Of a stretch of 64,000 bases of DNA, positions 32,699-54,837 are shown piece after piece. The stretch is taken from NCBI RefSeq assembly GCF_964204645.1, contig NC_134033.1, positions 1,942,131-2,006,130 on the forward strand, given 5' to 3'. A model generated the notes under the pieces. That model saw nothing but the letters and a program-made list of their open reading frames with translations. It had not been told where the DNA came from and ran no database searches. Source of the DNA: Tubulanus polymorphus. Taxonomy: Eukaryota > Animalia > Nemertea. A program made the position numbers and the translations under genes. Position 1 is the stretch's first letter. Every line of letters begins with the position of its first letter.

Positions 32699-33194
32699 AA
32701 TATATGATGCTTTTAAATGTTTTGTTGTTTGGCAAGGGAGTTCGTGGTTAATGATGACACCATTGAGTGTGACATTCTACGTCATATACCAACATCTAGT
32801 AATCACAGTCAGGTCTTCATTTGGGAGCTGCTGCAGTAGCTGAAGCTGCTAATAGCTGTAGATTGTATCTGCTACAGTTATATATTTCAGTCTCCCATAT
32901 AAAATTGGTGTCACAGAAAATGGCTGCGGAAAACCTTTTATCGCTGCTTTGCAGCTATATTGAATATATGCATTTATTTCTTGAAGTGTTATTCATTACT
33001 GGTGGAACAGAAAACCTGTTATCGCTGCTTTGCAGCTATATTGAATGTTGATTTATTTGTTGAAGTATCATTCATTTTGGTGGAACAGAAACCTGTTATA
33101 GCTGTTCAGCAGCTATATTTTATAAATATCAGTATGGGAGATTTAATCGTATTTTCAAATCTTTAAGTTACCAAGTTTTATTTCTTTTCCGCCG

Positions 33195-34147
33195 TCATAT
33201 TTTCCGCCGCGGGAGCCAATTTTTCGTCACGTAATTCTTCACCTCTTCACCGGTGAGAAGATAAACGTAGAAATTGACGATGCTGTTCGTGGCGTAGAAA
33301 TCAGCGACGATCACCGTAACGTCGATGAGAAGCTGGTCCGGAATGATGACCATTGTGGAGATTAACACGAACATATCGGTCGGGAAAATGAACACGACGA
33401 ACATGATCGATACCGTGATTACTAAAGATGTTGCTTTTCTCGTCGAGCTGGCCTTCTTACCACCCGCTCCACCGAATCGCTCCGACCGACGGAGCATCAA
33501 GATCAGAACCATGTTAAAAATCACCACAACCGTCACAGGTAAATACGACGTGAATGTGGGCGAAATTCGAAAACTGAAGTCCGCCCAGTATTGCGAAACG
33601 AACAGTCGGCGCTGTATTCCACAGCCATGAGTAAGTAGGTGAATGCAGCAAACCACGTAGTGGTTAACAAGATGACCAGCGTCCGCGAGACGAACGGCGT
33701 CGCTATGGTTCTGGCGGTGAACGGCCAGACGACAATGGCGAAGCGTTCGGCGGTCAGTAACACGATCAAACCCGAACTGATTATGTCGGTGACCGTGAAA
33801 AAATACTCGTAAAAATCACACGCGAAATTGCTGGTAAATTTGATGACCATTCGCGGATAGAAAGCGTAGTTAAGAACTGGCGCCGTATAGGCGAACATCA
33901 GCAGCGTATCGAAAACGGCCAAAGCCGCCAAATACGACGCGTAGGAGCAGACGCGGAATTTCTCGCTGGTCATGATGATGAAACTGGCGACGTTACCGAA
34001 CAGACCGATGAGTGTCATGATCGGTAAGATGATGACCTGCGCGTAACGGAGCATCGGAGAACAGAGTCTTGGAGAGTCGAACATGACGCTCGTGTACCAC
34101 GGCAGGAAATATCTAGGTGCTGTCGTTTTGTTGAAAGACAGCGACAT
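33195..34147 (-). pseudogene. Frameshifted GPCR copy 3
   Basis: Relative to copy 1, 13 nt (CGCGGCGGATGCG) are missing between 33605 and 33604. This removes the ECL2 GGC motif and splits the gene into ORFs 33533-34147 and 33195-33656. Confidence 0.85.
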
Positions 34148-37100
34148 GCCGCTCCGACTAAACTGAAAAGCTCCTTTAATTTACTGCTCCTTGCTCCTGG
34201 AAACACTCAGCTCTTAGATATACCGTGCTACCGGTGAACAGCGAGCTCCTTAGTAATGCCAAGCTTCTCAAAAACCTCGCTCCTTTGTCTTATAGCGGTA
34301 TCTTCCTTGCTCCTGGACACACACCCTCGATCGCCAGCCAACCTGGTCCACGTCAATTGTAGCTATCTGATAAAGCAAACAATCGATCCTGTCTCCTGAT
34401 ACTATCGAACAGTAACCAATCTCGAAGACGACAAATTTCGATTCTTTCGACTTTTAAAAAATAATTTCACTAAATTCGAAAGAAGATACCGCGCCTGCTT
34501 AACATGTTTTAGTGCCACAACGGTTCAAATTGACCACTCAGCGGCCAGCATTGATCGGTATTGATTTCAACTAGCTCTCTGAGCCCTGGTTTGATAAAAG
34601 ATAATTGCGTAAATGATAATTATTCTCGAGTCTTCATCACAGCAGGAGTCCGTCGTTAGAAAATAGCCGTCCATCTGCATAGACGCAGAAAATTACACCT
34701 TAAGAACCGACCCCGGGCATGAAGGAAATTAACTCCGATTATCCTTTGGGTTTTATTTCTAATGATATTTATCTATTTGAAGTATAAGTGTGTGGATCGG
34801 CTGCACTCAATAACACCATTTCTCATATCCTGGTCTCATTCGTGACATTTCTGACACTCGTAGAAGTTTTGCTGCTCTGCTTAAGGGGGCTATGGAGCCC
34901 CCACCATGAAGACGATGCCTTCATTCTACCACGTCTGAGTCAAAACTATGAGTCCAGTTCCATTGAGTCAGTTGCATATGACTCTAGAGTTAAAATGATT
35001 ATCATCAGTCCGGTGTACAATGTTTATTATCAGTAGGATTGACTTTTTAGTCAAAACAATGACTTCTATAATGAATTCAATAGTAGTCAGTTGAATTTGA
35101 AGAGTCAAATGATGACTCCACGCGCTACCAGATTTTTTCATAGCTATCCGATTTGACTCAAGTCAACTGAAATTAACTGATATTGACTTCTGCAGTCCTC
35201 GACGCCAAATGGACAGAACCGAACGCTTCATAAAAATAGAAAATTCGTGCAAAAACGAACGTAAGAAAAAATTCTTGAAGTCCGTCTGCTTGAAGTCCGT
35301 CTGCTCACGAATCGTCGCTCGTTCTCAAGGTCGAACGAAGGACGCACGTTTTTTCCGCCGGGCTCGTAAAAACCGAATCTCTCAGCAACGCTCAGACATC
35401 ATAAATCACCGTGGTGACGCGTGCAACAATGTATGCTCGTCGCACGAGGAGATAAATTTCTTACGCAACGCGAATGTAGTCAATTAACGAAATACCTGTT
35501 AGGACACCCGACGGGGGGAGGGGCGATATCAACCCCCTTCAGCCCCTCCCCCTCCAACGAATACAAACAGCCATTCATCAATCATCAATATTATGTATTG
35601 ACAATTTATCAATAAGATTCCGAAAGCAATCAATCAATAGATCGATAGTTACACTGGCCGTTTAAAGATACCGATATCTGGAATGAGATTGGCCGAATAA
35701 TATTATTCTTATTCAAAAGTACGATACGAAATACAGGCCTGAATCGCAACCGTGAATCAGGAGCTGATTATATACGACTGAAAGTCAAACGAGCCTAACT
35801 CAGACATATTTTCCGATGGTTTTCACTCATTCACCTGATGAAGCTTCTAGCAGAAGCTCGTGCGTCAAGTTAACAATCAGGTCTGCGTCTGGTAGCTGCT
35901 GCAGTAGCTGAAGCTGCTAATAGCTGCGTCTGAGTTCAGCTCATTTTACCTGATTTATGTCAGACTGAATTAGAAATTGACACCATTTTTCGAGTGATTA
36001 GGTCGAAGAGCGTCAGCCGTCTGCCGAGAGAGAGCGAGCTTCCTCGACTCAATCGAATACCGATCACTATGGTTACGTAACCCGGCTATGCATATACACG
36101 TGCGACATGTTCCTAGCTTCGTGTTCCACTGAACCAGTCCGCTCGGAGCCAACCACTCGAGAAAGGATGGCTCCAGTCCAAGCCTAAAAGTGAATACCTG
36201 TGTTTTTAAACCAACACATAGCTTACCATGAAAAAAGAAAGATTTGACTTTATGCTGTGATTTCAATAGGGATGACTCCAAAATGCTGTGATCGGGATAT
36301 CAATCCAGCTGGAGCCACCCCAATTATGAATATATGCATAACACTGAAACATAGCCCAACATAATAAGAGTTAGATTCAATTTTTTCGAAAAAAAATCGA
36401 ACATCATTTCAGATAATTTTCTTTAAAACTTTAAGTTTTCTTTAAGTTTGAAAAAACTTGCAAAAAAAATTTAAATACTTGAATCAAAATCTGAACGAAT
36501 TCGATTTGAAAGCTTAACAAAATTCTTAAAAGGAAATAATCAAAATGTCGTCTGCTCTCCTCCGTCGTAGTCATCTAAACAAACGTGCATAACGATAACA
36601 ATCATACTTGTTGCTCGAGCAACCGCCGCTGCCGTCTCAAAATTCGACCCGCCGGGAATACATCTCGGCTATGGTTGCTAGGCGACGGGATTCGCGGTAA
36701 CTCCGGCGCGGCGGTGCGCGGAATACGCGATCGTTGCGTCCCAGATAGATCTTTAATCAAACCGCTTCGATAATCAGCTGTTTTATAGTCACTTAAAACA
36801 CGATCTCAAACCGTACACCCCTATCAGTTTTATGGTGACAATTTTTCTCACTTAGAACAGGATCTCGAAACGTACACCTCCAAACCTCAAAAACTGTACA
36901 ACCATACCCCCTATCGGTTTTATGGTGACAATTTCTGTCACGACAGAACCTCAAACCCTTCAGTTTTACGGTGTCCCAAAGTCAATATCATGTGTACTAC
37001 TACCACGCCGACCCATTTTCTGTTTTCTTGACAAATGAAAAAGGGCGCTCAAAATAATTTGATGGACTTGCACAAGTCTGAAACGAGTCTCGCACTCGGA

Positions 37101-37659
37101 TCATTTCTTTCAAACACAGCTGAAGTAGGTATTCAGATCCATCCGAGTCTATTTCAGTTGGATCAAATTCACTTCTGTAAGAATAACTGTCACAGTTGAC
37201 TATGGTATTGTTGGCCTTAATCTTAATTTTCAAAAACATTTTCCTTGTATACTCTCAGAGTTTATCTTAAGTTAGTCTTTAAGTCAATTCTAGTCATTTA
37301 ATTGGCTTAAAATCATTTAAAAATTGCTAAATTTCCCACAAACCGGAATTCTTTTTGCAACAGGTGGATTTAAACAGTTTCTAGATAGAAAATTTGATAG
37401 AAATGTACAAACATCTGCGTCAGATATTGAGAAATGTAATTACACTTGCGCCATCTAACAGCAATACCAGTAACTACAATGCATATACCACAATGCCATA
37501 AAGCTGTAAGTTTTTCGATACATTGGAACAAATGACAGTCAGGGGAGGAATCTGGAACTAATAAGACACCCCCAAAACCAAAAAAAAATCTGAACAATCA
37601 TCGAGTTCTTACAAATCCCCCAAAAATCCTTATATTACTATTCTGACCAGTGAACAAAA

Positions 37660-37810
37660 ATTCCCTGATTAAATTACAAGATATCCTCAGTGAGGGCTGT
37701 TTCTTATCAAGAGGTTCCTCGTGTCACTCGTCACCAGCAAGAACAACAAGACACCAAAAATTGAAAAAAAATTCCCTTATTTTCAAGAAAAGAATCAGAA
37801 TTCCCTGATT
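37660..37810. repeat. ~110-bp dispersed repeat (caagatatcctcagtgagggctgtttcttatcaagaggttcc...)
   Basis: Further copies at 38772-38990 (two in tandem) and 24218-24320. Confidence 0.85.
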
Positions 37811-37842
37811 CCTGTAAAAAATCCAAAAAAAGAAAAACTTAC

Positions 37843-38683
37843 CTTTTTCTGAACCTCTTCAGCGACCTTCAGCTTCTTCTCGAACTTCGACCAGTCCATC
37901 ATTCCGTCATTGCGGTAAATATCGCAACCGTCGTCTGCAGCGCCGGTCGATTGCTGACGATTTTTCTGCTGATGCTGCGCGACAACATTGGCGGCGCCAC
38001 CGGCGGCGGCGGTCGACGACTTCTCGCGCGATTTCCGCATTTCGGCGTTCTCCGACGTTTTCAAATTCAGCTCGTGCGGCGCCGTCGTTTTACGAGCAGA
38101 CGCCGAATCGGGACTGGTGGCGTCGTCGTCGTCCGCGCCATCGCGCCGACATCCCCGCGCCGACGAATCCTTATGCAGATCGAACGGCAACGCGTTGGCG
38201 TCGATTTTCTTCAACTCGGCGAACTCCTGCGCCAAACTCAGATAGTTGATCTTCTTGACGCGTTTGGCGAACTCTTCGTCGGATTCGTCGTCGTGGCGTT
38301 TGATGTCGTTGGCGTCGGCGTCGTCGTCGCGCGGGTACATCGTGTTACCGGTCGCCAGGTCGTCCATGTTGATGATTTTGACGTCGTGCTCGGTGAAATG
38401 GTCGATCAGCGGGTCGGCGAGTTCCGAATAATCCGACAGGATCGACTCGCATTCAGAGTCGTTTTGCGGTTTCAAGGTCGTCAGCGGTAAATACTGGCAG
38501 ACGGATCCGTCGAACGGTTTCGATTGGTGGATTTTTTCAGGTTTCCGCGGCGTCGATACGGCAGGCTCGTCGTACGCTTCCACCTCCGACATTTCAACGT
38601 CCGAACTCGGACTGCTGTTCGATGTCATGGATGATTTTTGGTGCTGGTCTTTAAGCTGGTACGCCCTCCAAGCTCTTTGAATC
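37843..38683 (-). CDS. IQCJ-SCHIP1: Large exon (841 nt) of the IQCJ-SCHIP1-like gene: IQ motif IQRAWRAY, Ser/acidic linker, MDWSKFEKKL motif
   Basis: Acceptor ttttgtag|G (phase 2) and donor AAG|gtaagt (phase 0). IQRAWRAY resembles human IQCJ IQRAWREY; MDWSKFEKKL resembles SCHIP1 MDWEALEKHL (both recalled). Confidence 0.85.
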
Positions 38684-39576
38684 CTACAAAACAAAATTCC
38701 AAAAATATCATTTTTCTTGGGGTTCTTACAGATCAAGAATCCATAATTCTGTGATGTTTCTCTGACCCTTCATTCCCTGGTTAAATTATAAGATATCCTC
38801 AGTGAGGGCTGTTTCTTATCAAGAGGTTCCTCGTGTCACTCATTACCAACAAGAACAAGACACCAAAAATTCAAATTCCCTGATTAAATTATAAGATATC
38901 CTCAGTGAGGACTGTTTCTTATCAAGAGGTTCCTTGTGTCACTCATCAACAGCAAGAACAACGAGACACCAAATATTCAAATTCCCTGACATTTCCGGAT
39001 TTCTAAAACATTTTTCTCAGCTGTCAGAACCATTTTTATGGGCATGATCACTTTCCTAGTTTTGTCAGATCACTGGAAACCAAGTTCAGACCAGGCCGAC
39101 ACCGTGTAAGTTTGATAATCAGACCCTTGAAGATCAATTTCACATCAAATGCGCAAGTGAAGAACTCTATCAATACCGAAGCCGAGAATACTTCATAATC
39201 TTATGGACAGATGGCAGCACCAGTCGAGCATTGGTGCATCATAGAATTTGTCATCGAAACTAAAATAGAATATTCAGTCATCGATGTTTATTTTGAATTG
39301 CTCTCGAGAAATTCAATTGCTCCGAAATTTCCGTGATGACTCAATAAATTAAACCGTTGTTGGAATCTTACTGAATTACGTGTTCATAAGCAGATTTCCG
39401 ATTCCAGATTCTTTTTTGACGTGTTTGTTTTGACCAGAATATGCTCTACCCATCATAATCTGCTGGTAGAGTTTCAGGATCCGTACAGATCGGTCATTTC
39501 TGAAGTTTTCAAGGAGTTTTATAAAGGAGAAAATTCCGAGGAGGCCTCTGCGTCACCAAATTACTGTAGAATCCTG

Positions 39577-39887
39577 GGGCCGGTTGCATAGTCATGGCTT
39601 AGACTTAAGAACTTTGTTCTATAGCCAATCTAACAACTTAAGACCAGTCTAAGACCAACTTAGTTCTATAACCAATCTAACAACTTAAGACCAGTCTAAG
39701 CTCATTTTGGTTCTATAATCAATCTAACAACTTAAGACCAGTCTTAGCTCATTTTGGTTCTATAACCAATCTAACAACTTAAGACCAGTCTAAGCTCATT
39801 TAGGTTCTATAACCAATCTAACATCTCAAGACCAGTCTTAAGATTTTAGAGCACTCTTGGACTGAAGTCACGACTGTGCAACTGCCC
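39577..39887 (+). mobile_element. MITE A with an internally amplified 47-bp unit, CTG TSD
   Basis: Same TIRs as the 6154 element; CTG at 39574-39576 and 39888-39890; ~5 internal units. Confidence 0.8.
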
Positions 39888-39890
39888 CTG

Positions 39891-40020
39891 GGCTGGGTTT
39901 CATTGATATGGAAGAAAATGGTGGAAACAGTTTTAAATTTGTCAGTTATAACCATGGTTTCTCATTGTTACTGTGGTTGTCACACAGATTACTGATACTC
40001 AGTCTATATGAAACCGGGCC
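39891..40020 (+). mobile_element. Second CWG-target MITE (TIR GGCYSGGTTTCAT) abutting MITE A
   Basis: ggctgggtttcat ... atgaaaccgggcc, flanked by CTG on both sides. Confidence 0.65.
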
Positions 40021-40484
40021 CTGCTGTCATCCGGAAGTAAAACCAAAAATACTTTCAATTGAAACCCGCCGAAATTTCTTAGAGGGCCTAGTTTTATAAC
40101 TGTAACGATAATACCTGGTTGATTGATTCCAGAAAATTCCAGCCCTCTCTCTATATCTCTATCTCACTGCTCACAGGTCTCAATCTCACTCACTGTTCAC
40201 AGGTCTATATTATATACATACTATTACATACGATATCTCATATAGTGTTGTTACGCAGCATTATAAACGACTATCAAATAATCAGTTTAACCTAGAGAAC
40301 TATATCGTATTAAACCACTCATGAACGCCTGACGAGAGAACCGATCAAAGTCCCCCCCTCGTAAATAACAACCATTCGTCATCCTTACCCGTCGAACTAT
40401 CAATCAAATTTCAAAATTGTCACTTCTCATGCATCAGCTCGAAACCAGAGATCAGATCGCTGAACTCTGGAATCGTCACATTGT

Positions 40485-40754
40485 TTCATTGCAGTGCGAT
40501 GTACGAATCAGTGATGGATTTTGCTAGTACACCGCACTGCGGTGTATTGATTTAATTAGTTATTAGTAATTATCTCTCTTGAATGATGGCAGCACATGTC
40601 AAACATAGTGAAATACTAGTAACTAACGATACACTGCGTCGCGGTGTAGACGCACTATAGTGGTATTCCCGTTATTCAACACACTAGGGTGGAATTTTTT
40701 TTTAATTTCAAATCTCCAGCACTATAGGGTATTAACTAGTCAGCACTGAAAGGG
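40485..40754 (+). mobile_element. piggyBac-like MITE, 5'-truncated
   Basis: Ends gcactgaaaggg|ttaa; internal similarity to the 29563 copy. Confidence 0.75.
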
Positions 40755-41063
40755 TTAAATGTCTTGATGTAATTATTCTATGTCCTCCGAGATGGTTTGT
40801 CTAGGTCTGTGCGTATTAATTATTCTTAGTCTCCTGTCATGTCACTACTCGTCACCTTTTTTCTTACATCAATTTATTTGTTTCTACTCGTCTTGTAACC
40901 AATGTAGATAAATAGTTTATGTGTAAAATAAAGATCAATCAGTTTTGTTGTCCAAACTGGAACGTTCATTCGTCATTTCATCCGGATTTTCCGATATCGA
41001 CCATTCTTCGAGAATAGGACTAAATTTACAACTGTGGAACTGGGCCCACGGTATTTCAGATCT

Positions 41064-41082
41064 ACAGCGCCCCCTTGTGGTG
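41064..41082 (-). promoter_or_regulatory. Isolated consensus CTCF-like site (CCACAAGGGGGCGCTG) just inside the intron after the 81-nt exon
   Basis: Plus strand reads cagcgcccccttgtggtg. Confidence 0.45.
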
Positions 41083-41093
41083 AGAATACTCAC

Positions 41094-41174
41094 GTAATGA
41101 TACGGTCGACGTATTGTCGGGATTTGTTGCGACTCGTCGTCGTATTGTCTTCGATATCAACGCTTAACTGATGA
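41094..41174 (-). CDS. IQCJ: 81-nt IQCJ-like exon ((N)HQLSVDIEDNTTTSRNKSRQYVDRII(T))
   Basis: tttatttacag|T ... AC|gtgagt, phase 2-2. Resembles human IQCJ [11 protein letters not shown] with the same recalled exon length. Confidence 0.85.
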
Positions 41175-41639
41175 CTGTAAATAAAAAATAGAAAACATCT
41201 TAAAAAATCAAATCCATCCTCGATCAAAGATATTGATAGAAATTTGTTTGCAATAAACTTAAAAATGAAATTCATTCAGAAAAGAATTACATTTCTTTCA
41301 CTAATAACTTAACTGATGACTGTAAATAAAAAATACAAAACATCTTCAAATCAACATCTTCAATCCCGGATCAAAAACTTCGATACAAATTTGTTTGGAA
41401 TTAACTTAAATTTTTCGCTTATAAAAATGTGGGTAAACAGGGTCTAGAGCATTGGTTAGAATTCGACTTTTTATTAGTTTGAAAACCTGAAAATGAACTC
41501 ATTTTAAACTAAACCATATGGAACTGAGTTCTATGTTACAATCAGTGGTAATCAATATAATTTGGTCTCAATTTATTTTCTCTTAGGGATCTGGGTCCAG
41601 TATAACTGTGGAATTTATATGTGCAAAAGCGTCGATATG

Positions 41640-41950
41640 GATCGTTAACTGTGGATCTGGGTTCAGTAACTGTGGAACTGGGTTCAGAACTGTGGATCTG
41701 GGTTCAGAACTGTGGATCTGGGTTCAGAACTGTGGAGCTGGGTCTAAAACTGTGGAACTGGGTTCAGAACTGTGTAACTGAGTCCAGTAACTGTGGAACG
41801 GGGTTCAGAACTGTGGAACTGAGTGCAGTAACTGTGGAACTGGATTGTGAACTGTGGAACTTGGTTCACGAACTGTGGAACTAGGTTCACGAACTGTGGA
41901 ACTGGGTTCACTAACTGTGGAACTGGGTTCACTAACTGTGGAACTGGGTT
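41640..41950. repeat. 20-bp satellite (aactgtggaactgggttcag)
   Basis: Same family as 19515-20145. Confidence 0.9.
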
Positions 41951-42054
41951 TCATTGCTAAGTGATTGGAAATTAACTATCAGCCTGGTGGAACCATTTTC
42001 AGATCTAACGTTTGCCTGTAATATGAGCCACTATCAGTGCATATCAGACTGTAA

Positions 42055-42057
<3 letters not shown>

Positions 42058-42116
<59 letters not shown>
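42058..42116. repeat. (CAG)~19 microsatellite, intronic
   Basis: Direct reading. Confidence 0.95.
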
Positions 42117-42118
<2 letters not shown>

Positions 42119-42491
42119 CTCTCTACTGACTGCCATCTGTCAAATTGATGGGAGATATATTCAAGGTCAGTCAACCTGCATACCAGTTGACTATCTAGTG
42201 GTTTAACCCAATAGCACCTGTAAATCTGTTCCAGTTTTCAGACAAGCTTAAGATTCATATCCGGTATAATATAGAGTTCAGGGGCCAGTCTAAAAACCAA
42301 TCTAACAACTTAAGACAAGTCTAAGCTCATTTTGGTTCTATAACCAATCTAACAACTTAAGACCAGTCTAAGCTCATTTTAGTTCTATAACCAATCTAAC
42401 AACTTAAGACTAGTCTAAGCTCATTTTGGTTCTATAACCAATCGAACAACTTAAGACCAGTCTAACGAGTTGATCAGGGAATGATAGCCAA

Positions 42492-42720
42492 TTGTTAGTG
42501 AATAGAGTCCCCTCACACCTGACAGGTGACACTACACAGCTGACTGGTCACACATACCGACCTGATAAACTTTCAAACTCAGTCATTCACCACAGTTCTG
42601 TGGTCTAGTGGTAGGACACAGGGTTTACAAACTGGAGACCCAGGTTCAAATCCCGATGAGGACATTACCAGGCCATGGATGGGAAGAACTGTATATTGGA
42701 GAATTTTGAAAAAAATAATT
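42492..42720 (+). mobile_element. tRNA-derived dispersed repeat, copy 3
   Basis: A and B boxes plus the shared upstream block. Confidence 0.6.
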
Positions 42721-43104
42721 TTGTTTTAAACATTTTTTTTTTAGTAAAAAGAAATTCCCCGAAGAACATGAGCGACCCACCCTGTTTTAGATCAAGATTC
42801 AAGACTAGAATAAACCCATCTTAATTCCGATCAAACAACTCAAAGACCAGTCCTGGAGGATTTAAAACCTCTTTTGTGCCGTTGGTTTCATGGGTTCGAT
42901 GATATTTCGGTGAATTTTTCCATAAAATGCAATTCTCATCGGTTTATAAACAGTGAATGTAAACAGAACCCCGGTGAACGGTGACTTCATCCATGAGGTA
43001 TTTTGATGAGCGCGCGTGTGGTTTATCTATCGCGAAGAGTAAGGTTTTTTCAAACGCGTTATTTCGGTCCAGAGAGAAGGCCTCGTAATCCTCACTCAGT
43101 AACA

Positions 43105-44107
43105 ATCTCTCTCTCTCCCTCTCACTCTCCCTCTCCTCTCCCTCTCCCTCTCCTCCCTCTCTCTCCTTCCCCTCTCCCTCTCCCTCTCCTCTCTCCTTCC
43201 CCTCTCCCTCTCCTCTCTCCCTCTCTACCTCCCTCTCTCTCCCTCTTCCTCTCCCTCTCACTCTCCTCTCTCTCTCTCTCCTTCCCCTCTCCCTCTCCTC
43301 TCCCTCTCTCTCCTTCCCCTCTTCCTCTCCCTCTCCTCTCTCTCCTTCCCCTCTCCCTCTCCTCTCTCCCTCTCTACCTCCCTCTCTCTCCCTCTTCCTC
43401 TCCCTCTCACTCTCCTCTCTCTCTCTCTCCTTCCCCTCTCCCTCTCCTCTCCCTCTCTCTCCTTCCCCTCTTCCTCTCCCTCTCCTCTCTCTCCTTCCCC
43501 TCTCCCTCTCCCTCTCCTCTCTCCTTCCCCTCTCCCTCTCCTCTCCCTCTCTCTCCTTCCCCTCTCCCTCTCCTCTCCCTCTCTCTCCTTCCCCTCTCCC
43601 TCTTCCTCTCCCTCTCCTCTCTCTCCTTCCCCTCTCCCTCTCTCCCTCTCTACCTCCCTCTCTCCCTCTCCTCTCTCCCTCTCTACCTCCCTCTCTCCCT
43701 CTCCTCTCCCTCTCTCTCCTTCCCCTCTTCCTCTCCCTCTCCTCTCTCTCCTTCCCCTCTCCCTCTCCTCTCTCTCCTTCCCCTCTCCCTCTCCCTCTCC
43801 TCTCTCCTTCCCCTCTCCCTCTCCTCTCCCTCTCTCTCCTTCCCCTCTCCCTCTCCTCTCCCTCTCTCTCCTTCCCCTCTCCCTCTTCCTCTCCCTCTCC
43901 TCTCTCTCCTTCCCCTCTCCCTCTCCTCTCTCCCTCTCTACCTCCCTCTCTCTCCCTCTTCCTCTCCCTCTCACTCTCCTCTCTCTCTCTCTCCTTCCCC
44001 TCTCCCTCTTCCTCTCCCTCTTCCTCTCTCTCTCTCCTTCCCCTCTCCCTCTCCTCTCTCTCTCCCTCTCCTCTCTCTCTCTCCCTCTCCTCTCTCCTCT
44101 CTCTCTG
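43105..44107. repeat. ~1-kb homopyrimidine (CT-rich) tract
   Basis: Almost exclusively C and T on the + strand. Confidence 0.95.
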
Positions 44108-44621
44108 CAGCCTTAACATGCTGATACAAGAGATCGAACATATTTTCCGCAGATTTAAAAAGCAATTTCGATTATCTTACATCGCGCAACTCGCTTCCAC
44201 ATGTAAAGTTCTTCTTCGAGTTTGTAAAACAATGAAAATATACCGAATTTAACTCCACAAGTCAAAATTCTAATCCATGTTCCAATCATGGCTTAAGATC
44301 TATTTTGGTTCTATAACCAATCTAACAACTTAAGACCAGTCTAAGCTCATGTTGGTTCTATAGCCAATCTAACAACTTAAGACCAGTCTAAGCTCATTCG
44401 GGTTCTATAACCAATCAAACAACTTAAGACCAGTCTAAGCTCATGTTGGTTCTATAACCAATCTAACAACTTAAGACCAGTCTAAGCTCATGTTGGTTCT
44501 ATAGCCAATCTAACAACTTAAGACCAGTCTAAGCTCATTCGGGTTCTATAAACAATGTAACAACTTAAAACCAGTCTTACGATTAAGGCCACTTCGGACA
44601 AATCGATATTTCAACACTTAC

Positions 44622-44686
44622 TTTCCGACTAGAAGTTCCCCTTCATCCACTTGCTGCATCGTTTTTTCCAGTCTCATGGCTTCTTC
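44622..44686 (-). CDS. IQCJ: 65-nt IQCJ-like exon (EEAMRLEKTMQQVDEGELLVG(N))
   Basis: ttttgtag|GAA ... GGA AA|gtaagt, phase 0-2. Aligns without gaps to recalled human [21 protein letters not shown](N). Confidence 0.85.
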
Positions 44687-45949
44687 CTACAAAACATAGA
44701 CGCAATCAAAAAATCAAACGAATTAAAAAATATGAACCTCAAAATCGATTCGAATTTGAAACTTTCACAATTTTAGTCAAATTATTCCCGTCGTTACATA
44801 AACTATAAATTCCTAATTTTTTCCAAATATTTCACGGGTGTTTTTTTTTCATTTTCGAGAAAACTTGCCGGATAAAGTTGCCCTCGTTAAGGTGCCAATT
44901 GCTGAAAAGTTGGTTAAAGCTAACCGATGGATATATGCCAAAGTAACGATGAATTTTTTCATTGTCGCTATGTCAACTATCCGCCGGTAAACTGTAAGCA
45001 ACTTTTCAGCAACTGACCCGTGGTCAATAGCGACATCTGAATTCCCAAGTTTTCAAAGTTTTTTTTAAATTTGGCAAATTCCCTGGGGAGTTTTCCGTGA
45101 TTTAATACTAGATTTTTCTGATTGCCGGAGTTTCCCAGGTTTTCCACATCAGTGGCGCCACCTTGATTCAGTAAGTATACGTACCTGTTCGTATCGCTCG
45201 TACAACAATGACAGGTAGTATTTACGCGCGGCGTAACCACGGTAACTCGCTTGGATACGAATGGCGGCTCGCGTCTCGCGCGACTCGTTGTCGAGGACCT
45301 GCGCGAAAGATAAACGACGTAAACGGATTAGAAACGCGGATGCGACGACGACGAGACCGGCTATTAGGGGTAATTGTATGAGGCGCCACCACAGGGTGGT
45401 TGCGTGTGACTACACGATCCCTACGTCAATATAAGGAGTTTTCAAGGAGAAAATCTTAAGGAAGTGTCTGCATCACTTCTATACTCCATATTACAGCAGT
45501 CTCCTCCTAAATCAGTGCTGTTTATCTCAGTAAACCATTAATTCAGAGGTTTTATAAACAAATTTTTATTCTTTGAACTAACTAAACTTGGATTCTAATT
45601 TGGCAAACGCCAATTGAGCGAAACAATAACCAGTTCCCAATGGTATCGATTTAGGTGTAGTTTACTGTACAACTACCTATTTTCAAAAAGATGACTGCCT
45701 CTAAAATCCCCCTATGACATCATTAAATTGCTTACAGCGATCTGATCTATCAACCTTTCTAGGAAAAATCGCCGAAAACTATATTGTTTTAATAGTATCA
45801 TATTTCGTTTAATTAGAATGAATAAGAATGATGAGATTATTTCTATAAAGCGATCAGTCATCAGTGTCAACGCAATTACAGCGAATTTCAATCAAATTCG
45901 CATGAAATTTTCAACGACAAAAACTAATGCACGCTCGCGTAATTGAAAT

Positions 45950-46270
45950 AAATCCGTCAACTCCAATCTGCGTATGAAATCCGTCTGCTCCGATCTGTGA
46001 ATGAAATCCGTCTGCTCCGATCTGTGTATGAAATCCGTCTGCTCCGACCTCTGTTTAAAATCCATCTGCTCCGACCTCCGTTTTAAAATCCGTCTGCTCC
46101 GACCTCCGTATGAAATCCGTCTGCTCCGACCTCCGTTTAAAATCCATCTGCTCCGACCTCCGTTTAAAATCCATCTGCTCCGACCTCCGTTTAAAATCCA
46201 TCTGCTCCGACCTCCGTTTTAAAATCCGTCTGCTCCGACCTCCGTTTGAAATCCGTCTGCTCCGACCTCA
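45950..46270. repeat. ~27-28-bp minisatellite (aaatccgtctgctccgacctccgttt), ~11 copies
   Basis: Direct tandem repeat. Confidence 0.9.
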
Positions 46271-47149
46271 GTATGAATGCGATCGAGACATTGAGTTCAG
46301 TCTCTTTCCGAGGTCGGTGCAACAACCGATGAATTCTGGTCACGTATTCAAATTGATCGAAATCAGCAAATTTCGTAAAACTCGTGACCGGAGACAAAAC
46401 GGCTTCGAACGAAAACAATAAATTCAAACATCTCGCTCGTCCACCGGGGATTAATCAAACCAGAGAAGAACCATCAACTGAGAAATTGAGGAAACGAACC
46501 CTTTACTCCGGTTCGCTGAGGGACTGATGAAAGATTTAAAGCTTATATCAGAGATATGGCAAAACCCAAAATAACCCGAAGAAAATGGCGATGCCAAAAG
46601 AAACGAAGGTCGATGGCTGCTCGTACCAGAGCTAGAACGCTTCATTTGATCGCTCGGATCAATTGGAAAACTCGCGTATGTCAGCAATTAAAAATAACCG
46701 GAAATCCGTTTAAAAACGGAAAACTCTGTTACATTTACAGCGCTGTTTTATGAAACTTAAAATCGGTTCAAGTTTGAATTGCTGTCCTCTAGTTGTAACC
46801 AAAAATTTGAGTTTAACATTTTTGAGAAACTCAGTAGAAGGGGGCCGTTTGACGACATCATTGGCGAATCCGATATATAATAGCCCCTCAGAATCGCAGA
46901 AAGCTTTATAGCAGTTTGTACTGCACTGATTGAATGATCAGATATATATGACTATATCTGTCTCTCCTTGATCAGAACGACTTGAATGATGCGTATTATG
47001 AATAGAAGAGATGAATATGATTAAATTAACTATAGATGATTAACTAACTGCACTACTCTCTACTCAGTCAGTGTGAATACTACTAATTATATATATTTCA
47101 TATTGACTATCAGATCCATAGTAATATCTCACTGACAAGTATACCAAGG

Positions 47150-47465
47150 ACACCACAAGTCAACCAATGACTCCACAAGTATACCAATGACTCCACCGTC
47201 CAGCAATAACTTCATGGGTTCTAGCAATGACTCCACAAGTCTAGCACTGACTTTAGGAGTCTAGCAATGACTATGAGGGTGGTCCGACAATGACTTCATG
47301 AGTCCAGCCATGACTTCACAAGTCTAGCAATGATTTAAGGGAGTCTAGCAATGACTTTAGGAGTCTAGCAATGACTATGAGGGTGGTCCGACAATGACTT
47401 CATGAGTCCAGCCATGACTTCACAAGTCTAGCAATGACTTTAGGAGTCTAGTAATCACTCTACGA
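47150..47465. repeat. ~20-bp degenerate tandem repeat (agtctagcaatgact...)
   Basis: Direct reading. Confidence 0.8.
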
Positions 47466-47859
47466 GAGTCATAGCCCCAGGTAATTCAAGTCAACACAGA
47501 TGACTGCACTCACAGATTCCTCCTCTGGCAGGCGAGGCGATGAAAGAAGGTATTTAAGAATTACGCGATAAATAACAAAGAGTTAAAAGCGTAATAGTTT
47601 CAGCAGCTCTCACACACACACACAGTTCAGCATCAGGAATGTTTGAATCAATGCCAGTAACCCGCTATTAGCTATACGTATCATGATGCTTGCCAAAAAC
47701 TCTCAACATCTACGTAACTGCCTTCAATAGGATGACCGCCTCCACAACCTGCTGTTAGCTACAGATAGCGGTGCTCGCCAAAAACTCAATATCAAACTAA
47801 ACTACCCACAATAAGACGACCGCCTAGCATATCAACTTATTAATCTAAAATATCCTCTT

Positions 47860-48210
47860 CCAGAATAGATGACTGCTACCATAAATCCCCCTATGACATC
47901 ATCAAATTGACCTAGACCCGTCCACAATAGATGCTTGCCTCAATCAATCCCCCTGTGACATCAAATTGACCTCAGCCCATCCAGAATAGATTACAGCCTC
48001 CATCAATCCCCCTATGACATCATCAAATTTATCTAAGAGATGCTTCTCCAGAATGAATGACTGCCACCGTCAATCCCCCTATGACATCATCAATTTGAAG
48101 ACCCATCCAGAAGAGTTTACTGCCACTGTCAATCCCCCTATGACATCGAGTTGATGTAAATACCCATCTATAATTAGATGGTTGACTGTCTCCATCAATC
48201 CCCCTGTATC
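47860..48210. repeat. ~60-bp tandem/dispersed repeat (atccccctatgacatcatcaaatt)
   Basis: Also at ~45705, ~51678 and 52015-52255. Confidence 0.8.
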
Positions 48211-48512
48211 TACAATATCAGCCTTAAGTAACAGTCTCATGAAACTGACCACAATACTGCAGTCCGGTCAATAAGACTATGGTCAGTCAGTATGGTGGTC
48301 AGTTCACCGTGACCAACTGGTCAATCAAATCGGTCCGATTTCATTAGACGTATCAACGAACCGACCAGACCTGAACTAACTATATAATAACGAGCTACAC
48401 GCGGTTCACATAGAACCAACAGATTACGCCTTGCGATTCAAATACATTCATTCAGTCAACTTCGCACAACTCTGACCAAAATATCAGACCACCTAGTATC
48501 AGTCTTAATCAA

Positions 48513-48803
48513 TCCTTTCAGTGCGTCTACACCACAGTGCGGTGTATGAATCGGTGATGGACTTTGCTAGTACTCCGCATGGCCGTGTAATGTAATAAGT
48601 AATCAGTTTTTATCTCTATTATTGAAAGATGGCAGCACCGGTCAAACGTAGTGAAATACTAGTAACTAACGATACACCGCACCGCAGTGTAGACGCACTA
48701 AAGCGGCGTGCCATTATTCAACACAACTGGTATGGAATTTCTTTTCATCTCAAATATTTCATCTCCAGCATTTTCAGGTACAAATTAGTCAGCACTGAAA
48801 GGG
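48513..48803 (+). mobile_element. piggyBac-like MITE copy
   Basis: tcctttcagtgcg ... gcactgaaaggg; degenerate TSD. Confidence 0.75.
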
Positions 48804-49174
48804 TTTAGTAAGTCCAAGGGTCAGATGTATGAACTCTGGAATTCGATCATTTTTTCACATCCTCACGATAAGTGCAGAGTTTCCCGCACGTTCGAGCGGA
48901 GGGGGGCGGGGGACGACGTTTCACCGTTTTCGATGAACATTTGCGACGTCCGCGGAAAATCTGACGCGTGAAACGAGATTTCTATAGATCATCATCAATC
49001 GATAAATCAATGACACACGAGAGATCACGAGAGATGATGAAAATTGGTCTAAAGGAATCGATAACGTGTCCTTTAATTATCGATCGTCGAAGACCAACGA
49101 GGAATCAACGCGACCTTCAAACTGGCAAGGTGCTCCGCGAGGTGGTTGTTCTGTACTGGTTAGCTGACAATCAG

Positions 49175-49282
49175 GGTCCAGTTCCGCAATTTCAAGTTAA
49201 GATTTAACTCTTGAGTTAACCGATTGAAAATGAACTAACTTTAACTCAGAGTAACTCTAACTCGCAACTGTGGAACTGGGTC
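49175..49282 (-). mobile_element. MITE B (108 bp, TIR GGTCCAGTTCC), CAG TSD
   Basis: CAG at 49172-49174 and 49283-49285; reverse copy of 52843-52950. Confidence 0.75.
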
Positions 49283-49880
49283 CAGTAGGTTGAGAACCTG
49301 CGGGGGTCAATTGCGGACTGCTCCTAACTAGCTGTTCAGAACTCCTGATGTTGGGCTGCAACTGAGTTCCTAACTGTGTTGAATAGCACCTGTGCTTAAC
49401 AACTAAACTACCTATGAAGCACCTGTGCTACTTTAAAAGCCCAATGATCCATATTATATGAAGTTAAATAATCAAGGCCATAAGGAAAACTTGGATAGAC
49501 AACATCAAAGAGTGGACCGGTCTCACAACATCACAACTGCTGCCAGCTGCCCCTAGACAATCTTAGATCACGGGCCATAGATAGATAGAGATATCTAAGT
49601 GCTAATAATGGAGCGGCCCGTGGGGGTCAGATTTGACCCATCCCCATAAACTATGTCAATGTGAAAATAAATCCTAGAATAATGTTGATTTGTGATAAAG
49701 GGACTGAAAATAAACTAAAACCACGAATGCGCAGTTTGTCCTACGGCTTGGGTTCCTGAGGGTTAAAACCTATGAAGACCGATTTTATCCCGAGTCTATT
49801 TATTCGATGAACTAGTTTTAAAAGTCTTAATCCAGCTCTATCTAAAAGTCTTAGATCAAAGCTCGGTGAAAAAATGTGAT

Positions 49881-50180
49881 CAGCTGGTATTGTTGGTGAA
49901 TTGGTTCACCTCACAACTGACTGGTCACCACTGGTCACCACACACCTGACGGGTCATTTCACAGGTGACTGGTCACCACAGCTGACAAGACAAACTTACA
50001 AACTCGCTAATTCACCACAGTTCTATGGTCTAGTGGTAGGACACTGGCTTAGAAAGCAGGAGACCCAGGTTCAAATCCCGGTGGGGCTTGGTTTGGGGTC
50101 AGAGAAATCCTGGTGGGGCCAGGGTGAGGGGAGACCTGTAGATCTAGGAATTTTGATAAAAGAAAAAGAAAAATTTTTTT
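49881..50180 (+). mobile_element. tRNA-derived dispersed repeat, copy 4
   Basis: TGGTCTAGTGG ... GGTTCAAATCC with the shared upstream block. Confidence 0.6.
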
Positions 50181-51111
50181 TCGACCCAATTGTGAGTTCA
50201 ATTTGACTCTCAAGTCAAAATCAGTTCATTTCCGATTTTAACACGAGAGTCAAATTCATACCCACAACTGGGTCGGTCCCCAGATCCTGACAGACAGCTC
50301 CACAACGCATTTATAGCCTACCTTTAATCAAACACTTATCCCTGAGTAAGCAATAATCCTCTTAAACACTGATCTATAATAATATTCCTGAGCGACGAGC
50401 GAGATATGATTTCCGCATTTTCAAAAACTCACAAACGGACGGAAAATTGAAATCATCAATGAATCGCGTTCACCGGTGCAGGCCGAGCGTCTGCGGCTAA
50501 CTTTAGCGTTTTGATTCCCGAATAATAATCCCCATAGCGAACGAGATGCTTTACTCGCGCGCGAGGAGTTTATACTGATTACGTATTGATTCGTCGGTAC
50601 AACCTGCAGCAGCAGCAGCAGCAGCAGCCACTACTCTCGCAGTATTACTGTAACTAGCTCTCTCTCTGAGGGTTACTCGTCGTACTGTAACTGTCTCTGT
50701 CTCTCTCTCCCTCTCCCTCTCTTTCAGAGAATATACTGTAATACCTGACATCTCTCTAATCATCCTGTAGTTTTCACCAGCAATTCGTCATCGGAATTAA
50801 TTGTTTTATTGAAAATGAATGATTCTGATTTTGCGAGTATTTCGATATTGTTGGGAAAATAGTATTCAAGTAACTACTCTCAAATAGTAGTCTTAATCAG
50901 GTCGGAAAATAGGGACAAAGGATGTTTCTGATATCAAAACTAGCGGTTTGAATGAAAATGAACAATGAATCATTTGATTTTGAGAGTATTTTTGATATTT
51001 TTGGGAGTGGTTAAATGAAATTTCTCAAACTATTTTGACAATTTCTATAGCCAATCTAATGACTAAGGACCAGTCAAAGACATTAGTTCTATAGCCAATC
51101 TAACAACTCAG

Positions 51112-51266
51112 GGGCTAGTTGCACAGTCATGACTTAAGTCCAAACGTGGTCTTAAATCTTAAGACTGGTCTTAAGTTGTTAGATTGGTTATAGAACTAAG
51201 TTGGTCTTAGATTGGTCTTAAGTCTAAGTCTAAGCTTAAGTCTAAGTCTGATTATGCAACCGGCCC
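51112..51266 (-). mobile_element. MITE A (reverse) inserted into an older MITE A copy, CAG TSD
   Basis: CAG at 51109-51111 and 51267-51269. The flanks (51040-51108, 51270-51330) are the two halves of a diverged forward copy. Confidence 0.75.
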
Positions 51267-51363
51267 CAGGGCCAATCTCAAGATTTAAGACCATTTTTGG
51301 ACATAATTCACGACTGTGTAACCAGCCTCTGGACCTAATTAAACCATTATCTACTGGACCTCG

Positions 51364-51365
<2 letters not shown>

Positions 51366-51427
<62 letters not shown>
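51366..51427. repeat. (AT)n microsatellite
   Basis: Direct reading. Confidence 0.95.
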
Positions 51428-51428
<1 letters not shown>

Positions 51429-51714
51429 GGGTCATTGCCTGTCGTATAAACGCACGATTTTTTCAAACAATATAGACATTGTGACGACGTCTGCTACGAT
51501 CCGGTTACCATGGTTACACGCTATTATTCCGCACGTCTGCCCGCTAGTAATAATTGGTCGTCGTTGTTTTCATTCTTTTTTTTTAATCGGAATTTTTCAT
51601 AAATGCCCGTTACATAATCGTAGTTTAAATTGACGGAATTGGTGACAACTGTTTAAAAGAAAAATGTCTTGCCTTCATAAACCCCCTTTGACATCGTCAA
51701 AATGCCCGTGTAGT

Positions 51715-51973
51715 CAGGGTCCGATCTAAGCACTTGTCCGATTGCCCGGGACAAGTATATTCTCATAAGGGCAAGTAGGTAATCATAATCACTTGTCCGC
51801 CGGGCTAGTGCAATCATTTATGTCACAAAGCTGTTTTTTTCCCACTCGATACAACGGATCATAGTGCCACCAATCGGACTGCCTGTGTAGGGCAAGTAGT
51901 TTTTGGAGGGGCAAGCAAAATTTCAGAAATGCTTAACCCGGCAAGTGGCTTCCATTCCTTAGATTGAACCCTG
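51715..51973. mobile_element. MITE with CAGGG termini and a 5-bp TSD (GTAGT), possibly hAT5-like
   Basis: TIRs cagggtccgatctaag / cttagattgaaccctg; gtagt at 51710-51714 and 51974-51978. Confidence 0.7.
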
Positions 51974-52842
51974 GTAGTGATATGATTTATGGACACTTCT
52001 AGAAAATCTGGCTACCGCCATAAATCCCCCTATGACATCATCAAATTATCTACTAGTGAATGAAACTATAGACCTTCAAGAAAAATGACAGCCTTCATAA
52101 ATCACCTAATGACATCATCAAATTTGATTCAGCTCCATAAATCACCCTATGATCTCATCAACAAATTGCTCAACGATTAAATCGATATATCGCTAGGTGA
52201 ATTCTCTAGGAAAGATGGCCGCCTCCGAAAATCCCCCTATGACATCATCAAATTAGCACCGACGAAATCTGTTCTGTCATGAAGGAATTTTCGGAAAGTA
52301 AAGCTGAATACCAGACAGATGTAGAGGATTAATTCCGGTAAAATTCGGTTTTGATTTGAGAAGAGGATGAGAGGAAAACCTAGTTCGAGGAAAACCTATA
52401 TCGCAAAAAACCTTCTCCGCAGCTAAAGGGTTAAACAGGGTTTGTAGCAGTCGGACTGAAGCCAAAGTCAGCACTTATAATCATTATTTGAAAGTCTAAG
52501 GCCGGCACTTTTTTCCCTGAATGCAATGACAGTTTTCATAATAAATGAAATCAGAAATAAGAAAATATATCAGATTTCTTTCGCAAGTTTTGACTATGTT
52601 TAACAGGCAGGGTCGCTACAGATTGGCCACTCCCGGAGAAAATTTCGAATTTCGAGGAAATGTCTGCCTTTAAAAGCATTCCCTGATTAGAAGGAGTTTA
52701 TAAGGTATCAAGGAGTTGTATCGGACCCTGACTGGAAATTTTGAATAGATGACAATACGTCAAAAGAAATTTCCTGAGATTACATTGAGTCCAAAAAGAG
52801 CAGGCAATTACTTTCACCTAAAGTACTTTTCAGGGCATTCAG

Positions 52843-52950
52843 GACCCAGTTCCACAGTTGTGAGTTAGAGTTAACTCTGAGTTAAAGTTAGTTAATTTTC
52901 AATGTTTTAACCCAGGGTCAAATCTTAACTCAGAACTGTGGAACTGGACC
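52843..52950 (+). mobile_element. MITE B (108 bp), CAG TSD
   Basis: gacccagttccacagtt ... aactgtggaactggacc; CAG at 52840-52842 and 52951-52953. Confidence 0.75.
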
Positions 52951-53171
52951 CAGGATTTTACCAAAAGCCAGCACTAATCAGGACCTATCCAATATTTTTC
53001 CCGAAGGTCGGCACATTTCAGACGCACTTGTTACAAACCCTATCGAACGTGCTTCGTCTTACCTAGAATTACTCATCACAATCTAAAACGACGACATTCG
53101 AATTCGTGAAAGAATCGGAATTATTTTTTACTATCGACAAATTTTTCGACGATCGTGAAATGTGGACTTAC

Positions 53172-53231
53172 CGTCGCCATTGTCGTCGTCGTGTTCGGTA
53201 GGATACATTTCGCCAGCGCCGGGTCGACAGC
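53172..53231 (-). CDS. IQCJ: 60-nt in-frame exon (AVDPALAKCILPNTTTTMAT) of the IQCJ-SCHIP1-like gene
   Basis: ttttctctttatgtttacag|GCT ... ACG|gtaagt, phase 0-0, no stop. An internal ATG in ACAATGG context lies 9 nt before the donor. Confidence 0.75.
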
Positions 53232-53424
53232 CTGTAAACATAAAGAGAAAATCACGACTATCGCTCGAAGCTTCATTAGATTTTCATTTATTCATCGACA
53301 AGTTGAACTCTTTACTTTGCTTTATTGGTTTTGTTTGTCGGATTTTATCGGTTTATTGAGGAGTTTTCATAATCACGTGTTTGCACAGGTATCAATCTGC
53401 GGCCTATGGAACAAACCGAAACCC

Positions 53425-54188
53425 ACTTCACACATCAGCTTTTGAAAGTGTGCTGATAAAATTTCTAATGTCTGGTGTTTGTAGTTCATTTTCAATTCAA
53501 AATGTCTCGGATGAAGCACTGAACACATGTGAAGTGTGGACGATCAGTTTTTGAAAGTGTGCTGATAAAATGTCTAATGTCTGGTGTTTGTAGTTCATTT
53601 TCAATTGAAAATGTCTCAGGTGAAGTCCTGAACACATGTGAAGTGTGGAAGATCAGTTTTTGAAAGTGAGCTGATAAAATGTCTAATATCTGGTGTTTGT
53701 AGTTCATTTTCAATTAGAAATGTCTCAGGTGAAGCACTGAACACATGTGAAGTGTGGAAGATCAGTTTTTGAAAGTGAGCTGATAAAATGTCTAATGTCT
53801 GGTGTTTGTAGTTCTTTTTCAATTAAAAATGTCTCAGGTGAAGCACTGAACACATGTGAAGTGTGGACGAACAGTTTTTGAAAGTGCGCTGATAAAATGT
53901 CTAATGTCTGGTGTTTGTAGTTCATTTCCAACCAAAAATGTCTCAGGTGAAGCATTGAACACATGTGAAGTGTGGACGATCAGTTTAGAAAGTGTGCTGA
54001 TAAAATGTCTAATATCTGGTGTTTGTAGTTCATTTTCAATCAAAAATGTCTCAGGTGAAGCACTGAACACATGTGAAGTGTGGACGATCAGTTTAGAAAG
54101 TGTGCTGATAAAATGTCTAATATCTGGTGTTTGTAGTTCATTTTCAATTAGAAATGTCTCAGGTGAAGTTCTGAAGTGTGGACGATCG
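53425..54188. repeat. ~109-bp tandem repeat, ~7 copies
   Basis: Near-identical units (gaacacatgtgaagtgtggacgatcagtttttgaaagtgtgctgataaaatgtc...). Confidence 0.95.
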
Positions 54189-54235
54189 AAAATTGTAAGA
54201 ATGAAGATTAAGGTAGATACAGGGAAGTTCTTTAA

Positions 54236-54494
54236 CCCTCTCAGAGCCGACTAGTTAATACCTTTAAGCGCTGGAGCTAATTTCAAACTTTAAAAAAAAA
54301 ATATTCCACCCCAGTGTGGTGTATAACAGCAATAACATTGGTGCATCTACACCACCGTGCGGTGTATCGTTAGTTACTAATATTTCCCAATGTTTGACAA
54401 TGCCATCTTTCATTGGAGATAAAAACCAATAATATCAATACACTGCGGTGTACTATCAAAGTCCATCACTAATTGATACATCGCACTGAAAGGG
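54236..54494 (-). mobile_element. piggyBac-like MITE, reverse orientation
   Basis: ttaa|ccctctcagagc ... gcactgaaaggg; reverse complement of the 29563 family. Confidence 0.7.
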
Positions 54495-54630
54495 TAAAGG
54501 AATACAGTGTAAACTCACCTCTAACAGCGTACGATCGCGATCAACACGATCCAATCTCAATACACTGCGGTGCGATGTACTAGTTGAGTCCACCGCACTG
54601 AAAGGGTTAAGGAAAACAGTGTAAACTCAC

Positions 54631-54837
54631 CTCTAACAGCGTACGATTGCGATCGACGCGATCCAATCTCATTTTTTCCAAATTCGGTTCGTCGAGGTAA
54701 AAACTGCTCTCGTTGTTCGACGATGATTTATTGTAAAGCGATTCTAAACTGTTGTCGTTCATATTTCGATCGCGGCGGGTGATGATGTCATCGAACTGGC
54801 GTCGTTTGTCGAGATTCGCTGATAGACCGCTTATCAT
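54631..54837 (-). CDS. First coding exon of the IQCJ-SCHIP1-like gene (MISGLSANLDK...NRTLLE); exon spans 54908-54631
   Basis: Acceptor ttttttttag at 54910-54909, in-frame TAG upstream of the ATG, 69 codons, donor GAG|gtgagt in phase 0. Confidence 0.7.

Follow-up and report, generated by a model that had tools for sequence, protein, structure and literature searches.

A nemertean orthologue of the IQCJ-SCHIP1 locus supports an ancestral single gene

The human locus that encompasses IQCJ and SCHIP1 is spread over three records, IQCJ, SCHIP1 and IQCJ-SCHIP1, and has been listed as a transcription-derived gene fusion (McCartney et al. 2019; PMC6764479). Is the long form a recent read-through product of two genes, or are these two genes the parts of an old single one? 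We addressed this question using a stretch of 64,000 nucleotides (nt) of the nemertean Tubulanus polymorphus, called the window hereafter (G000:C9:1942131-2006130, where G000 is the genome and C9 is contig NC_134033.1). An earlier note made from the letters of the window had described five minus-strand exons of an IQCJ-SCHIP1 gene, and it had proposed an IQ-bearing form older than vertebrates, with IQCJ as the 5' portion of an ancient single gene. The source of the DNA is indeed an invertebrate and not a vertebrate. Our analyses show that the window very probably holds the 5' two-thirds of the single-copy Tubulanus orthologue of the vertebrate IQCJ/SCHIP1/IQCJ-SCHIP1 locus, in the form of one 86-kb gene with 13 exons. 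That IQCJ-SCHIP1 is an ancestral single gene is well supported.

Among 1.84 billion representative proteins compared with the translated 841-nt exon of the window, XP_074657986.1 shows 100% identity over its residues 177-456, and 84 weaker relatives were also found. XP_074657986.1 is a Tubulanus polymorphus protein of 912 residues labelled ‘uncharacterized protein LOC141910976’, and it is the product of the minus-strand gene. This public sequence, which is identical to the exon translations, served as the query instead of a model spliced by ourselves. It was mapped exactly onto the window and the 47 kb to its left, with GT/AG demanded at each junction. The mapping yielded 13 GT-AG exons on the minus strand, six in the window and seven to its left (Table 1). 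From exon 1 to exon 13, their lengths are 207, 60, 114, 65, 81, 841, 294, 468, 165, 75, 112, 94 and 160 nt.

All five exons named in the earlier note (exons 1, 2, 4, 5 and 6) are present on the minus strand, with AG acceptors and GT donors. The lengths that it gave for the last three are right, as are the phases of the 65- and 81-nt exons, with an N codon split across the 65- and 81-nt exons and a T codon across the 81- and 841-nt exons. Nevertheless, one exon was missed. The note joined ...MAT directly to EEAMRLEK, and the 114-nt exon that carries the first IQ motif sits between the two. It was overlooked because both flanking junctions are in phase 0, so that the direct join is also in frame. 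The note put the coding exons of human IQCJ at 9, 65 and 81 nt, and it had taken MAT for the counterpart of the 9-nt exon. MAT is in fact the end of the 60-nt internal exon and is followed by the 114-nt exon, and therefore this parallel is spurious.

Table 1. Features of the gene and of its largest intron. Positions are those of the window, except for exons 7 to 13, for which contig positions are given. GPCR, G-protein-coupled receptor; ORF, open reading frame.
Feature	Position	Strand	Length and phase	Remarks
Coding exon 1	54631..54837	-	207 nt, phase 0 to 0	ATG at 54837; GT donor
Coding exon 2	53172..53231	-	60 nt, phase 0 to 0	AVDPALAKCILPNTTTTMAT; exact mapping
Coding exon 3	45185..45298	-	114 nt, phase 0 to 0	AG/GT; tblastn and exact mapping
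Coding exon 4	44622..44686	-	65 nt, phase 0 to 2	EEAMRLEKTMQQVDEGELLVG(N); Pfam PF15157 match begins here
Coding exon 5	41094..41174	-	81 nt, phase 2 to 2	HQLSVDIEDN...VDRII(T)
Coding exon 6	37843..38683	-	841 nt, phase 2 to 0	IQRAWRAYQ...MDWSKFEKKL...QKK; GT donor after 37843
Intron between exons 6 and 7, share in the window	1..37842	-	~42 kb in full	exon 7 outside the window
Exon 7	G000:C9:1937300-1937593	-		begins SRRNDREEIRRKLAMG; holds NLQICF
Exons 8-13	1913750-1914217, 1913167-1913331, 1912213-1912287, 1912012-1912123, 1911408-1911501, 1910601-1910760	-		exact mapping
GPCR ORF 1	27597-28589	-		intronless; Pfam 7tm_1 59 bits
GPCR ORF 2	30786-31751	-		intronless; Pfam 7tm_1 50 bits
GPCR ORF 3	33195-34147	-		two overlapping ORFs; Pfam 7tm_1 33/32 bits

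Does the gene belong to the IQCJ-SCHIP1 family? XP_074657986.1 matches PF15157 (IQCJ-SCHIP1) over residues 128-203 with 45.6 bits for a cut-off of 28 (E 8.6e-12), PF00612 (IQ) with 27.1 bits (cut-off 20.3) and PF10148 (SCHIP-1_C) with 252.5 bits (cut-off 23.5). In a BLASTP comparison with the N-terminus of deer IQCJ-SCHIP1, 39% identity was found over 57 ungapped residues (E 1e-14). The similarity to IQCJ claimed in the earlier note is significant by both measures. A 12-taxon alignment including deer, ray and sturgeon is gap-free over the 49 residues from EE to IQRAWR. The IQRAWR motif, found directly after the IQCJ module from position 38682 downward, has I, Q, R, A and W invariant in the 12 taxa, and the (M/L/T)DW..(L/I)E, RRKLA and NLQICF motifs can be aligned from cnidarians or bilaterians to mammals.

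Many proteins contain an IQ motif, and the 841-nt exon by itself gave no meaningful match to Pfam; the resemblance to IQCJ could be ascribed to a generic IQ motif and chance. We give this explanation next to no credence. The spliced public protein exceeds the curated cut-off of PF15157, most of the identity with the deer sequence falls outside of the IQ motif, and the conservation extends to the exon structure, as detailed below. The PF15157 score, the BLASTP match to deer and the gap-free alignment refute it; judged from sequence comparisons, the resemblance to IQCJ is far beyond chance.

The SCHIP1 part was sought to the left of the window. A whole-genome scan with PF10148 identified four exon-wise matches there, on the same strand as the exons of the window, the best of them with 89.8 bits. 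All PF10148 matches in the genome fall at this one locus, which indicates a single orthologous locus. The SCHIP1 core exons that the earlier note had advised looking for are thus in place, with exons 7-13 together encoding RRKLAMG, NLQICF and the SCHIP-1_C coiled coil. A six-frame scan of the genome with PF15157 gave no match, because the match to this profile is spread over three exons.

Read from the N-terminus, the protein has first a helix, then IQ motif 1 and the IQCJ module, which is the product of the 65- and 81-nt exons. IQ motif 2, a linker and SCHIP-1_C come next. Exon 1 encodes a conserved N-terminal helix motif (..RLDRVDRNRTLLE) that is also present in Lingula, sea urchin and cnidarians. 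IQ motif 1 (IRIQASYRGYAARKY) is carried by exon 3 (~45215-45274) and corresponds to the Pfam IQ match at residues 98-117 of XP_074657986.1. Exon 6 harbours IQ motif 2 (38623-38682), an acidic, Ser-rich stretch, the conserved motif NYLSLAQEFAELKK (38206-38247) and the SCHIP1-type MDW motif (37876-37899); the observation that the IQ and MDW motifs lie in one exon was therefore correct in the earlier note. The linker is long, acidic, Ser-rich and probably disordered, and it contains both the N.LSLAQEF and the MDW motifs. The SCHIP-1_C region comprises NLQICF and a leucine-zipper coiled coil.

The central motif of the linker, N.LSLA(Q/E)EF..(L)K (38206-38247; residues 322-335 of XP_074657986.1), follows an acidic E(T/S)DEEF.KR sequence and, among lophotrochozoans, is better conserved than the rest of the large exon. 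Sequences of sea urchin, hemichordate, amphioxus, sturgeon, ray and fugu also have a recognizable form of it, unlike those of deer or cnidarians. No Pfam model covers it.

How old is this arrangement? Exon lengths of 210/39/111/65/81/791/94/70 nt were obtained by exact mapping for Nematostella, and the Branchiostoma belcheri gene has exons of 153/39/111/65/81/241/417/237/81/189/225 nt. Tubulanus, Nematostella and Branchiostoma belcheri agree in the 65-nt exon (phase 0 to 2), in the 81-nt exon after it (phase 2 to 2) and in the IQRAWR opening of the exon that follows. The counterparts of Tubulanus exons 2 and 3 (60 and 114 nt) measure 39 and 111 nt in both of the other genes, and the exon of the first IQ motif is kept in every phylum examined. 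The Nematostella exon starting with IQRAWR also encodes TDW, LQICF and the greater part of the coiled coil, and hence the IQCJ and SCHIP1 parts are in a single exon. Using the Haliotis and Branchiostoma orthologues as queries, we found the IQ, PF15157 and PF10148 domains annotated together in cnidarians (Nematostella, Acropora, Oculina), molluscs, the brachiopod Lingula, the bryozoan Watersipora, echinoderms, hemichordates, amphioxus and vertebrates; a human protein was among the matches. The domain set is present in at least eight phyla. Because Nematostella, Tubulanus and Branchiostoma share the exon layout, the origin of the undivided IQCJ-SCHIP1 gene goes back at least as far as the ancestor of cnidarians and bilaterians. 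Both proposals of the earlier note are supported by these results: the presence of the 65/81-nt pair and IQRAWR exon in Nematostella and Branchiostoma, together with a domain set found from cnidarians to amphioxus, makes the IQ-bearing form older than vertebrates, and the exon layout and domain set across phyla are those of a single old gene with IQCJ as its 5' part.

Alternatively, the IQCJ and SCHIP1 parts might have been joined independently in several invertebrate lineages, a scenario with which arthropod SCHIP-1_C proteins devoid of an IQCJ part and the expressed vertebrate SCHIP1 isoforms without it would agree. Such convergent fusions are very improbable, as the order, lengths and phases of the exons (39-60/111-114/65/81/IQRAWR exon) match in Cnidaria, Nemertea and Cephalochordata. 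Moreover, with a domain set that occurs in eight or more phyla, it is simpler to assume that arthropods lost the IQCJ part.

Intron positions further downstream also bear on the undivided gene. The intron before (R/N)..REEIR is found at the same place and in the same phase in Tubulanus and amphioxus (five residues before REEIR, phase 0). A ray isoform with an extra segment at this point suggests that a vertebrate has this border too. In an alignment that is poor in this region, ~34 columns separate the amphioxus intron that follows the 241-nt IQ exon from the vertebrate IQCJ|SCHIP1 junction. At the other end, vertebrate N-termini diverge just before EEL; this divergence and the gap-free 49-residue alignment are compatible with the vertebrate exon lengths given in the earlier note. 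Alternative N-termini start exactly at exon borders in amphioxus (alternative exon leading to EEAKRL), Patella (MIY|SHKLEV) and Ylistrum (METNS|IQRAWR). Therefore, isoform diversity generated by alternative first exons is not peculiar to vertebrates.

We then turned to transcripts of exon 6 and its surroundings. The exon is present in six sequencing runs of Tubulanus polymorphus, and the contigs of four runs were aligned to positions 37600-41400 of the window. One contig of run X4 (record 13, 906 letters) covers 38463-38682 and continues directly with 41093-41174, which corresponds to the exon 5|6 junction with a one-base ambiguity, namely the G common to both sides. Of the joins proposed in the earlier note, that between the 81-nt exon and the IQ exon was thus seen, in one transcript-type contig. 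Two other contigs, from X4 (record 12, 978 letters) and X5 (record 17, 170 letters), stop exactly at the 37843 donor, and the 978-letter contig has 524 further letters that are not on the aligned stretch. Relative to the window, X4 contigs also contain in-frame insertions in the large exon, one of CACCGG behind 37997, where the sequence is Ala/Gly-rich, and one of GCG behind 38546; they probably reflect alleles that differ in the length of the disordered linker.

Several points weigh against our reading of the locus and of its product. None of the contigs aligned to 37600-41400 was displayed as bridging exon 6 (37843) to exon 7, and therefore the link between these two exons rests on the public gene model, the use of the donor at 37843 and homology. 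We infer the RNA nature of runs X4 and X5 from the spliced contig, not from their records. The intron between exons 6 and 7 houses three same-strand GPCR ORFs. Drosophila Schip1 and its arthropod relatives share the SCHIP-1_C domain with the Tubulanus protein; unlike the latter, the arthropod proteins among the matches listed have PF10148 alone, with no PF15157 or IQ match recorded. Their IQCJ part appears to have been lost or to have diverged beyond recognition, and the IQ part is thus dispensable in some lineages. Finally, all functional statements made below are carried over from vertebrates and Drosophila by analogy.

Some of these points could indicate two adjoining genes, like those annotated in vertebrates, with an IQCJ-like gene that ends soon after the 841-nt exon and an SCHIP1-core gene that starts 42 kb downstream; the 912-residue model would then be a prediction artefact or a rare read-through. 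In addition to the 42-kb gap with its GPCR ORFs and to the lack of a displayed bridging contig, the frame closes 15 codons on if the 37843 donor is unused, and some public models are split, such as a Mytilus coruscus protein with IQ and PF15157 only and a partial Owenia model. Nevertheless, we consider two genes very improbable. In Tubulanus, the IQ motif shares its exon with the MDW motif, which in vertebrates is a feature of SCHIP1 proper. The contigs stop exactly at the 37843 donor, and one of them has its 524 remaining letters lying elsewhere. The intron five residues before REEIR, in phase 0, is exactly as in amphioxus, and IQ motif 2, TDW, LQICF and most of the coiled coil form one exon in Nematostella.

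The Tubulanus protein and vertebrate IQCJ-SCHIP1 have their parts in the same order, i.e. the IQCJ module (EE..QV..G.....NH.L...), IQRAWR, an acidic Ser-rich linker, MDW..LE, RRKLA/NLQICF and a C-terminal leucine-zipper coiled coil. Both match PF15157 and PF10148, and the 49-residue spacing from the start of the module to the IQ motif is identical. Nevertheless, they differ in several respects. The worm protein has ~127 extra N-terminal residues with a further IQ motif, which are absent from the aligned mammalian, ray and sturgeon sequences. A single exon encodes both its IQ and its MDW motif and is not interrupted at the place of the vertebrate IQCJ|SCHIP1 junction, and a large acidic insert (the 468-nt exon) is found within the SCHIP-1_C region. 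Fish share the central N.LSLAQEF motif with the worm, whereas the deer sequence lacks it. Ray-finned fish harbour a second HHL...IIQRAWRA segment upstream of the canonical IQCJ module (residues ~35-75 in Huso huso, ~75-100 in Takifugu). This segment looks like a duplicated unit of the 81-nt exon and IQ motif rather than the first IQ exon of invertebrates.

The vertebrate picture of two genes plus a read-through is a matter of annotation and alternative ends. As for the ancestral state, we lean towards a eumetazoan ancestor with one SCHIP1 gene, whose full-length product had two IQ motifs and the conserved N-terminal helix. Several changes would then be secondary. The main tetrapod isoform would have lost the first IQ exon and arthropods the whole IQ part, chordates would have gained or moved an intron behind the IQ exon, and an alternative terminal exon would have created stand-alone IQCJ.

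Part of this is already public: there are a gene model and domain calls, orthologues carry ‘IQCJ-SCHIP1-like’ names, and the databases thereby imply a single gene. RefSeq proteins called ‘IQCJ-SCHIP1 readthrough transcript protein-like’ in Haliotis, Mytilus, Magallana, Ptychodera, Branchiostoma and Watersipora have the IQ, PF15157 and PF10148 domains and the same motifs, with 34-53% identity to the large exon of the window. In contrast, the Tubulanus protein is longer (912 residues) and is labelled as uncharacterized. The single-gene idea had been voiced, or hinted at, for the human locus (Abascal et al. 2018; PMC6101605). Among the papers in the library searched, none was found with an explicit statement on invertebrate IQCJ, and the exon-level argument across three phyla may be unpublished. 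Overall, the observation in the earlier note was right in part, with one exon missed and one parallel wrong, and its interpretation was right, but the idea is less new than it assumed.

The introns of the gene contain other ORFs and repeats. The three GPCR ORFs between exons 6 and 7 are of the rhodopsin family, with weaker Srw-type matches as well; they are closely similar to one another, in tandem and nested in the intron on the same strand as the gene, and they are not part of IQCJ-SCHIP1. The third is split into two overlapping ORFs and is therefore either frameshifted or a pseudogene. Short tandem arrays of a 47-nt unit (AACCAATCTAACAACTTAAGACCAGTCTAAG...) are found in three introns (39616-39843, 42295-42465 and 44305-44577). 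The summed contig depth reaches 88,000-124,000 around positions 39632-39758, and this unit is therefore a very high-copy repeat of the genome. The intron between the 65- and 81-nt exons also contains a 1-kb CT/GA-rich low-complexity array (43106-44106), which yields a spurious ‘RERE/GEGE’ ORF of 391 residues and an antisense partner of 373 residues. In the first intron, a 109-nt tandem repeat (53434-54175; 6.8 copies, 94% alike) gives rise to chains of short ORFs on both strands that are not exons of the gene.

What might the protein do in the worm? In vertebrates, the ankyrin-G repeat domain is a binding partner of IQCJ-SCHIP-1, which is positioned at the axon initial segment in a manner that depends on phosphorylation by CK2 (PMC12190637). 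Structure prediction for the N-terminal 151 residues of the Tubulanus protein gave long helices with no compact fold (mean predicted local distance difference test (pLDDT) score 74.6, predicted template modelling (pTM) score 0.31), and these predicted helices are compatible with IQ-type calmodulin-binding helices. By analogy with vertebrate and fly work, the two IQ helices would bind calmodulin, the phosphorylatable acidic linker would bind ankyrin, and the C-terminal coiled coil would oligomerize and contact FERM proteins of the Merlin/Expanded type. The worm protein would thus most likely be a calcium/calmodulin-tuned scaffold that links ankyrin/spectrin and FERM proteins via its acidic linker and coiled coil, and vertebrates would later have used this scaffold of the cortical cytoskeleton at axon initial segments and nodes.

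The practical gain from these results is modest. They indicate that IQCJ-SCHIP1 is old and undivided and did not arise recently as a transcription-derived fusion; the argument is the presence of identical 65- and 81-nt exons in representatives of Cnidaria, Nemertea and Cephalochordata. The result matters for human nomenclature, with its three records for one locus, and for studies that count the locus among read-through fusions. It also draws attention to portions of the protein not covered by work in mammals, namely the second IQ motif, the N-terminal helix and the central N.LSLAQEF motif. If there was indeed one ancestral gene with two IQ motifs, the human IQCJ, SCHIP1 and IQCJ-SCHIP1 records would deserve to be merged into one, and the role at the axon initial segment and node would represent the vertebrate reuse of a much older, calmodulin-regulated cortical scaffold.

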